Source: Octopus bimaculoides (Eukaryota). From it: DNA of 64,000 nucleotides. The stretch covers positions 53,777,268-53,841,267 of the forward strand of contig NC_068999.1 of NCBI RefSeq assembly GCF_001194135.2, written 5' to 3'. The notes below the pieces were generated by a model, which made no database searches, was not told the DNA's origin, and saw only the letters and a program-made list of their open reading frames with translations. Positions within the stretch are counted from its first letter, which is position 1. Every line of letters begins with the position of its first letter. This document shows, piece after piece, positions 52,601 to 64,000 of the stretch. The translations under genes and the position numbers were made by a program.

Positions 52601-55600
52601 AATTACATGACAGCCTTCAGATATATTGTTTTTTGTTTGTAATAACTCTAAATTTTGTTTTCTAAAGGTTCTTCGAGTTGTTCGTCTCATAAAAGCATCT
52701 CCAGTTCTTGAAGACTTCTGTTGGAAGGTTTGTATATTTTGTCATTATTCCTGTTAGGAATCAGTTGTATGTGGGGCCTCCATCAGTTAATGTTGACCAT
52801 ACGTCTGCACATGTATATGCAGGCCTGATCAAAAGCTTTTGAGGAAGACTAACAGTCACCGACACATGCAAGTCTTTCCTTTCTCTCCATGCTACCTGTT
52901 TATCTAAGTTAAAGGCTGCAAACTTGAACCAATATAGCTTGGCACTAGTATAATCACAGGCATTACTGTCTGAACACAAAGGGCCTGAACAGATACAACA
53001 AGGCATTATGCCCAACTCTCTAACAGTTTTACCAGTCCTTTATCCTTGATGGGTACATCAACACATGTCTATGCAGGCGTCAGTGAGATTTTTTGAAGAA
53101 GAAGAAGACGATGACTGCCAGTTGCCCATGCATACAAACCTCTCCTCTCCGTGCAACTGAAGTTTACTCAAAGGAAAGTGGGGCTGATACAGCCTTGTAT
53201 CTGTGTTATCACAAGTAAAGAGTCAGAAGAGATACTACAACCCTCTGACGGTGTCACCAGTATGTCACTTTGAATTGGTACTTTTTTTTGTTGACCCCCA
53301 AAAAGATGAAAGGCTAAGTTGACCTCAGTTGAGTTTGAAATCAGAGTGCAGAGGGTCAGAACAAATACTGCAAGGCTTTCTAACTTTCTATTGACTTTGT
53401 CAGTTTGCTGCCTTAGAAACCAGTTTTAGTTTACCTATTTCTATGACATTTCCCATCATCAGACACAATAATTGTATCTCCCAGATATCTTGGACTTAAT
53501 TTGACGTACTTCATCATCATCATCGTTATTTAGTGTCTGTTTTCCATGTTGGCATGGGTTAGACAGTTTGACTGGAATTGGTAAGCCAGAGAGTTGTACC
53601 AGGCTCCAGTCTGTTTGGGTTTGGTTTCTACAGCTAGATGCTCTCCTAATACCAACCACTTCACATCACAAAACCCAATAAAATTGCAAGGAGTATGATA
53701 ATGGCAAACTGTATAAGCTACAGACCTTTTAAAGTGATGTTTTAGTTAGAAACTGTGAAATCATATTTCTTTATTGACAAACTACTCAATATTCCTTGTC
53801 ACAAGTGCAGTTAAGAACAAAGACAGGACATTTTAATGTTACATTTTTACTGTGAAAACATTATAAAAACAAAATTGCCATCAATGTATCATACTTAATG
53901 CAAATACACTAATCATGGGCAAATCACTGCAGTATTTTTATACATTTATTCCATTCAGTTTTATTTTATTTATTTATTTATTCTTTGTTAATTTCAAATT
54001 TAAAGTCCTCCTTAATATTGGTGTATAGCTATTTCATAGAGAATCTTTTCAGTACAAACTGAAAGTCTACTACAATTTTACTATAAAGTTTTTGAAAATT
54101 TTATTTATTTAATTTTGATTTGTAAATTTTAGAATTTTACTGTGAAAATAGTTTTGAACTTTCTGTTTCATTTTAAATTTTATAACTCTTACTTCCAGAT
54201 CTTTGGTCCTGGCAAAAAACTGGGCAGCTTGATCTTGTTCACCATGTGCCTGCTCATCATAGCTTCCAGCATCAGTTTACAGTTGTTCTGTATCATTACT
54301 AACAATAAAAAGTTTGATACATTCCCTCATGTAAGCTCTCAAATAAAATTTCAATTTTCATTTCATATTTTCCAATAATGTTTTTCTATTTTAAGTAGGA
54401 AATCATTAATTTATTTAAAATTTAAATTATTTCAATTAAAGATAACTTCATACAAGCTAAATTATCAATTTCTAATTTTAAAAATAATCTATTTGTTAGC
54501 ATTTTTTATTAATAATATTAAGGAGTAGAGTGGCAGAGTGAAGATACCTGGCCCAGTGGTTTAGGATGTTGGACTCAGGATCACTTGTGGGTTCAGTTCT
54601 CAGACTGGGCAGGTTGTGTCCTTGTGCAAGTCACTACACTTCATACCGCTCCAGCACACTCAACTGGAAAAGAGTACCACTGACGCCTGGAGTGGCATCC
54701 TGTTCGAGAGGAACTGTTGTACTTTCAGCTTAAATGTCTTGAAAATCCAGATATGCTTCACTCTCATGAACTTGTAAGTTCAGAGCAGACAGTGGCAGAG
54801 GGAGTGAGAGACTGAGCCGTAGTGCAGTATTGTTTATACTCCAATGCAAGCGCTGTGCTTTGTCTCAGGGCAAAACACTCTTAATCCTGTTTGCCTGGGA
54901 CACCTAATAAAGAAATTACCACTATTAATATTATCTAGAAATTGATATTTACTTAAAATATTCATTATCACTTTAAATTAAATTTATATTTGTTGTATCA
55001 ACTCAGTTTATAATATGAGCCAATGTTATTGTTATTTTTCATAAAGTAACTCATTATTTGATATAATATCACACTTTTTCTCAATATCTTTTATTGTGTT
55101 TTCAAGAATCTGTACTTTTATTTAAAATTTTATTTTCAAAATCTTGTCAATTTTCAAACTCATTTACTTCACTTTTTTTTCAGTTTCTGCTAAGACTTCC
55201 ATTGCAATATGTTTTACCAATAAATAATAGTATTTTCATTTTAATACTTTTCCTGGCGAGATGACAAGCAGTTTTTATTCAAAATTCTCTTAAATGTTAC
55301 ATGAAATAATCTATTATTATATTATAAATATATTTGTGTGTGTGTGTTATATATTATAATGTTGATTTTTATATATATATATATATATATATATATATAT
55401 ATATATATATATAAATATATATATATATATATATAACACAGTTACCAACTTGCTGTTATAAATATTTGATTTTTGTTTTTTTTTTGTTTTTTGTATGTTG
55501 GTACAGTTTTAATATTTTATAATGTAAATATAATACCTTCCATTTTCAGTCTTCAGATATCACATGTAAATTGGAAGTTGTTTATAATGATAATGATATT

Positions 55601-63160: not shown

Positions 63161-64000
63161 ACTAAAGTTATATTACTTCACAAAATAAAAACTAGTTGGG
63201 TTTTCAAAATGTTACTGGGCCTCAAAAGCTTATTGTTCTACAGAAAAACATTAAGGACTAATAAGGCAATATGAAAAAAATATTTAATAAAAAAATTGAA
63301 TCTGGGAAATATTCAATAATACATGTTTATAAGTAAAACCCTCTTTCTCCCTCTCTCTCTCTCTCTCTCTCTTTCTCTCTCTCTCTCTCTCTCTCTCTCT
63401 CTCACACACACACTGCTGTGTGTGTTATGTACATGTGTCTAACTTTGGCCTTCTATATATGTTCTGAGAAATATTTACAAGCAGTTGATTAGTATTACTA
63501 ATACAACTAATCTTGACTAACTGAATTGTGCATGGTTTACTTTTTCAGAATCTTGCAAATATTACAACTAAAACCTGTTTCTCCTCTTATGCTTCATTGG
63601 ATTGCAATATAAATTTGATTTAATTAATCTCCATGAATGAGGCTTGAAACAGCCACCCCTTTGCTTTGCCTGCTTTCTTTCTCTCTCAAATTTCCCCTCT
63701 GCTTCAATTTTCTTTTTTAACTATTAAACTTGCCTCTGTTCCACTGGAAAGAGATGAATGTCAGTATCAACATTGTCATCATCATCATCATCATCATCAC
63801 CACCACTTGAATTATCATCCTCTTCCTCTTCATCAGTGCCTGTATTTTTACCTTATTGTTACATAGGATATGTATTACTTATGCTTGTTCATCCAGCTTG
63901 ACAATAAATCTTGAAATTTCATCCCAAACTAAAAGTAATATTCCAAATAATTATTCCCAGTTCGTATTATCAATTCATCATTGACCTTTTTTTTTATGTC

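Follow-up and report, generated by a model that had tools for sequence, protein, structure and literature searches.

The octopus NALCN gene carries the Glu form of a probable pair of alternative domain II pore exons

The exon at 61655-61801 of a 64,000-nt stretch of Octopus bimaculoides DNA (contig NC_068999.1, positions 53,777,268 to 53,841,267 of the forward strand; hereafter, the window) is very probably 15a, the Glu-encoding one of two alternative NALCN pore exons arranged in tandem, with the Lys member (15b) lying beyond base 64000, so that the gene would encode channels with either an EEEE or an EKEE selectivity filter. A pair of this kind was described for NALCN of Lymnaea, in which 15a (Glu) lies upstream of 15b (Lys) (Senatore et al. 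2013, PLoS One 8:e55088, PMC3557258), and was also reported from other molluscs, annelids, flatworms, echinoderms and hemichordates; the species list of that study included no cephalopod (PMC3557258). That a cephalopod should have this known exon pair is to be expected and will not surprise a specialist. The value of the finding is in indicating that a Glu/Lys switch known from gastropods, annelids and other invertebrates would have been kept in a large-brained cephalopod.

The gene and its Glu-form pore exon

Vertebrate NALCN served as a lead only for finding exons by tblastn, and the exon borders were then set by eye on GT-AG sites. The resulting 12-exon model, on the forward strand, encodes 589 aa from the ATG at 40325 to 61801, with an open frame throughout and GT-AG at all junctions. 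Coding exons 1-11 (40325-54330) cover domain I and S1-S5 of domain II and are located at 40325-40615, 41851-41934, 44305-44444, 45441-45569, 46171-46316, 47631-47773, 49132-49236, 50103-50324, 51580-51747, 52668-52727 and 54199-54330. Since the model matches human NALCN (7cm3_A) collinearly with 772 bits (E=3.4e-231, residues 3-589 to 3-588), and Cav3.1, its best non-NALCN match, scores far lower (153 bits), the gene is identified from its sequence as NALCN. The window carries the 5' half of this single-copy octopus gene.

The pore exon of domain I (47631-47773, forward strand), recovered by motif scan, tblastn and the gene model, has its filter Glu in SQEGW (codon 47669-47671). The constitutive exon that precedes the proposed switch (54199-54330, forward strand) ends in KFDTFPH with the codons CCT CAT, is followed by the donor gtaagc, and has an orthologous exon in three further mollusc loci (below). 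Next comes the 15a equivalent at 61655-61801 (forward strand), which encodes domain II from the P-loop to proximal S6. Its flanks are ccactgccag on the 5' side and gtgagt on the 3' side, and its 49-residue translation, which has FHLFVSL at its end, matches Pfam Ion_trans (positions 177-220). The TQEGW motif is at 61682-61696, and both the motif scan and the alignment place its filter Glu at the GAA codon 61688-61690, aligned with E554 of human NALCN, which Chua et al. named as a filter residue (PMC7182417). Both filter residues that can be read in the window are thus Glu, in SQEGW of domain I and TQEGW of domain II.

A sequence-only reading had described 61655-61801 as a phase 0-0, Glu-form exon behind a 7.3 kb intron, in a gene with introns of about 0.6-2.4 kb elsewhere. 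In the gene model the exon is phase 0-0 with GT-AG borders and 147 nt long, which agrees with this description, as does the GAA codon, and the preceding intron (54331-61654) measures 7,324 nt vs 601-2,370 nt for the other ten coding introns.

The Lys exon in the same gene

The sequence-only reading had also reported no TQKGW-like exon in 54331-61654 or 61802-64000 and no next constitutive exon before 64000, and had predicted a Lys partner downstream. We scanned the window in six frames for T(Q)(E/K)GW-like motifs and detected only the pore exons of domains I and II, and tblastn of the window with the octopus exon, flatworm Lys-form and arthropod Glu-form peptides gave no second domain II pore exon. 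A Lys exon or a degenerate pseudo-exon inside the window was considered and rejected, as the motif scan and tblastn at E values up to 100 returned low-complexity noise only. Concealment by an assembly gap was likewise rejected, there being no runs of N after 46967. The following constitutive exon, recognizable by an IV(I/L) motif, had no tblastn match in the window at permissive thresholds. Both reported absences were thereby borne out, and the part of the intron 3' of the Glu exon that falls in the window (61802-64000, forward strand; 2,199 nt), which starts at the U2-type donor gtgagt, has no exon by tblastn.

The predicted partner was found in a UniProt entry for O. bimaculoides (P0082, 812 aa), retrieved by a search with the 589-aa model. 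This entry is 100% identical to the window gene in 11 of the 12 exons and skips the 60-nt exon at 52668-52727. After KFDTFPH it reads the Glu exon, then a Lys segment of 45 residues, and then the constitutive sequence. Since P0082 reads the Lys segment directly after the Glu exon and ahead of the constitutive one, and the window has none, the Lys exon is placed in the same gene, >2,199 nt 3' of 61801 and beyond base 64000. The octopus Lys exon, as read from the P0082 translation, has 45 codons (135 nt, a multiple of three).

Pore exons in other mollusc loci

Three further mollusc loci (L002, L003 and L004) were retrieved via ORFs covering exon 14, the constitutive exon that ends at 54330 in octopus. 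In L002, exon 14 ends at about 10159 and is followed by a Glu exon at 12314-12451 and a Lys exon at 16863-17000. In L003, which is Nucella-like, the corresponding features are at about 10147, 11549-11686 and 13364-13501. The third locus (L004) has the end of exon 14 at about 10210 and a Glu exon at 14897-15040, and the 5.2 kb of sequence left in the locus has no Lys exon. The Glu exon therefore precedes the Lys exon in two other mollusc loci, with the Lys exon 4.4 kb (L002) or 1.7 kb (L003) downstream, and, judging from these loci, it is normal for the pair to be spaced several kb apart. All Glu and Lys exons of the three loci have GT-AG borders and lengths that are multiples of three, and their exon borders, like those of the second-octopod exon described below (L001), are the same as those of the window Glu exon. 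As the sequence-only reading had proposed, the octopus arrangement matches the mollusc 15a/15b system: Glu upstream and Lys downstream is the order in PMC3557258, P0082, L002 and L003.

No constitutive exon was found 3' of the Lys exon within 6.8 kb in L003 (13501-20318) or 3.2 kb in L002 (17000-20177). Since this exon is out of reach in both loci, long introns flanking the alternative pair seem to be common.

To assign the window exon to a type, 17 exons were aligned, comprising mollusc Glu exons, Lys exons and the corresponding exons of single-exon taxa (vertebrate, spider, insect). All six mollusc Glu exons, including that of the window, have Phe-His in S6 (FHLFVS or FHFVVN) and are without the Ala/Gly-Pro motif just before S6. 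Tyr-His is found at this S6 position in all Lys exons and all single-exon taxa of the alignment, and the Ala/Gly-Pro motif in all of these except one flatworm Lys exon. The Lys exons also have GW.(E/D/A)VMH.TM in common. In the L002 Glu exon (12314-12451), the residue before the filter Glu is Ser and not Gln (MFQIMTSEGW), and identity to its octopus counterpart is only 43%.

Divergence of and constraint on the Glu exon

The Glu exon had been singled out as longer and more diverged from vertebrate NALCN than its neighbours, and this is accurate for the three upstream exons: identity to vertebrate NALCN is 47% for the Glu exon vs 61-80% for the three preceding exons, and the Glu exon is 3 aa longer than its vertebrate counterpart, seen as a gap of three residues when it is aligned with human NALCN. 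It does not extend to the gene as a whole, as the loop-encoding exons 3, 5 and 8 are equally diverged. What is unusual is that a pore-lining segment should be so diverged. Between octopus and gastropods, identity is 51% for the Glu exon (Nucella) vs 89% for the Lys exon (Bulinus); on these identities the Glu exon is the fast-evolving member of the pair, which is why it looked odd to the earlier reader. At 49 aa it is compared with 46-48 aa in the other mollusc Glu exons.

A second octopod sequence informs on the constraint acting on this exon. An ORF (P0038) on a Logan contig of 1,180 nt (L001, run ERR12921339) has the Glu exon of another octopod at 370-513 (48 residues). The two exons are 86% identical in DNA, with the acceptor and donor conserved; in the flanks, identity is 85-88% over the 40 nt upstream of the acceptor and the 20 nt downstream of the donor, and 50-70% farther out. 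Five codons differ by synonymous changes only (three of them in S6), eight by nonsynonymous changes, and there is one in-frame codon indel, which leaves the linker of the second octopod one codon shorter than that of octopus. The Nei-Gojobori dN/dS, calculated from small counts, is 0.28 for the whole exon, 0.10 for the pore helix, filter and S6, and 0.53 for the P2-S6 linker. Though the counts are small, the pattern suggests a coding exon under purifying selection rather than a relic. In the second octopod, moreover, the Thr at the second position before the filter Glu, which is otherwise highly conserved, is replaced by Ile (ILIQEGW, ACT>ATC). This change and the fast evolution of the Glu exon could indicate weakened constraint, and the Gln-to-Ser change in L002 may be another sign of loose constraint on the Glu form.

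These observations bear on an alternative that we consider improbable, namely that the Glu exon is a relic in decay or seldom used and that the channel made by octopus is in practice the Lys (EKEE) form alone. The contrast between 51% and 89% identity to gastropods would fit such decay, as would the Thr-to-Ile change beside the filter and the codon indel in the second octopod, and secondary loss of 15a is documented elsewhere, Schistosoma and Helobdella being reported to lack it entirely (PMC3557258). A two-isoform profile search also gave no cephalopod transcript across exons 14-16, its best matches being 72-79% identical. However, the frame of the exon is open, its splice signals (acceptor, polypyrimidine tract, gtgagt donor) are of canonical form and kept in both octopods, and the filter QEGW and the S6 sequence FHLFVS are retained. 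The dN/dS values, low overall and lowest in the pore helix, filter and S6, and the synonymous-only differences, three of five in S6, also argue against decay, as does the roughly equal abundance of the two isoforms in Lymnaea (PMC3557258).

The tandem reading of P0082

P0082 is a mis-annotated, truncated and uncurated model. It joins the alternative exons in tandem and drops a conserved 60-nt exon (20 residues), faults in the public O. bimaculoides annotation that the comparison brings out. Its C-terminal ~90 residues are without NALCN similarity. The Glu and Lys exons each have a length divisible by three, which lets a gene predictor join them without breaking the frame, as happened in P0082.

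Taken literally, the entry would mean that both exons enter the mature mRNA and that domain II has a duplicated pore segment. We regard this as very improbable, although P0082 is written so and the exon lengths would keep the frame: an extra P-loop and half an S6 would be incompatible with the six-transmembrane topology of the solved NALCN structures, the entry skips a conserved exon and ends in non-homologous sequence, and every other mollusc or rotifer protein retrieved has only one of the two exons. A representative protein search for full-length cephalopod NALCN had as its best full-length match a protein that is not from a cephalopod (P0293, 60% identity, EEEE filter). Least credible of all is that octopus has lost the switch or placed the Lys in domain III, the fallback of the sequence-only reading; the window itself has no Lys exon, but the one in P0082, 89% identical to Bulinus 15b, makes this fallback unnecessary.

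A proposed splicing switch and related systems

In the favoured reading of an alternative Glu/Lys pair, exon 14 (ending at 54330) would be spliced to either 15a or 15b and then to the constitutive exon. Splicing to 15a would place Glu at the domain II filter and give a calcium-channel-like EEEE channel, and splicing to 15b would place Lys there and give a sodium-channel-like EKEE channel. By analogy with Lymnaea, the two exons would be used one at a time in octopus and the domain III filter residue would be Glu (the predicted filter sequences of domains III and IV being LSLEGW and TGEDW), and we infer that the isoforms differ in ion preference.

Several bases for exclusive use can be set aside. 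The intron between the two exons exceeds 2.2 kb in octopus (1.7 kb in L003 and 4.4 kb in L002), and steric hindrance is therefore excluded. All splice sites seen are U2-type, which excludes U2/U12 incompatibility as far as the window sites show. Including both exons (147 and 135 nt, each divisible by three) or skipping both would keep the frame, which excludes decay triggered by a frameshift. Exclusivity would then have to rest on RNA pairing, with competing structures, or on splicing factors. In a comparison of octopus with the other molluscs for conserved intronic docking or selector elements, only the exons aligned.

The closest known system is 15a/15b of Lymnaea stagnalis, which involves the same gene, the same borders from the domain II P-loop to proximal S6, phase 0-0 and the order of Glu before Lys. 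The Lys-exon signature starting with GW.EVMH.TM is also common to Lymnaea and octopus. The octopus gene differs in coming from a cephalopod, in having a Glu exon of 49 aa, and in the unusually long 7.3-kb intron before it. In Lymnaea, brain and glands favour the Lys form, heart and muscle the Glu form, and overall the two are about equally abundant (PMC3557258).

NALCN of arthropods (myriapods and chelicerates) has the exons 31a/31b, which are also tandem pore exons with Glu first and Lys second, switching between EEEE and a Lys-containing filter (PMC3557258). However, these are in domain III and give EEKE, and the event was likely evolutionarily separate (PMC3557258). Exons 31a/31b differ little beyond the Glu/Lys residue, whereas 15a/15b differ at about half of their positions. 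The exons 12a/12b of invertebrate Cav3 T-type channels are also domain II pore-module exons that shift calcium/sodium preference (PMC9694082, PMC7382465), but they belong to another gene and change the extracellular turret (domain II S5-P) and not the filter residue itself.

In view of its lineage-specific Phe-for-Tyr change in S6, the lost Ala-Pro motif, the octopod linker 3-4 aa longer and the Thr that varies between octopods, the Glu exon of molluscs, octopus included, might bring more than a one-residue Glu/Lys switch. It might be a fast-evolving alternative pore module, of which the gating, block or partner binding, and not just the Ca/Na preference, could differ from those of the Lys form and which might diverge in function between cephalopod lineages; we put all of this forward as a speculation that is rather unlikely to hold. 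There has as yet been no ion-selectivity measurement for an EEEE-type NALCN (bioRxiv 10.1101/2025.04.04.647097), and octopus would offer another natural EEEE/EKEE pair for testing ion selectivity.

Introns and repeats around the Glu exon

Repeat and ORF scans of the 7,324-nt intron (54331-61654, forward strand) gave no exon-like ORF, and there was no Rfam family or tRNA in it. On both strands of 54000-64000, no other gene, Pfam-bearing ORF, RNA family or tRNA was detected. The intron holds a (TA)n simple repeat at 55370-55435, an (AC)n simple repeat at 55937-55991, a local duplication of 167 nt (55436-55602 and 56035-56194), and, at 58346-58586, a SINE-like element that recurs five times elsewhere in the window (near 26237, 35051, 39457, 45200 and 50962). 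A long T-rich tract (61478-61650) precedes the acceptor. About 12% of the intron matches repeats in the window or in the intron itself, and much of the remainder is AT-rich or simple. A functional meaning of the intron length was considered and rejected, as what fills it is repeats and AT-rich or simple sequence, and nothing points to function.

An inverted repeat pair of about 140 nt (59858-59997 and 60807-60946; 76% complementary, ~810 nt apart) is located ~700 nt upstream of the Glu exon and has no further copy in the window; its arms could pair into double-stranded RNA in the pre-mRNA. The 40 kb that precede the NALCN ATG (1-40324) include five N gaps of 10-786 nt. A repeat 3' of the Glu exon (62987-63178) has copies near 30876, 31793 and 39193, and the interspersed repeats of the NALCN introns and the upstream region are 67-78% identical between copies.
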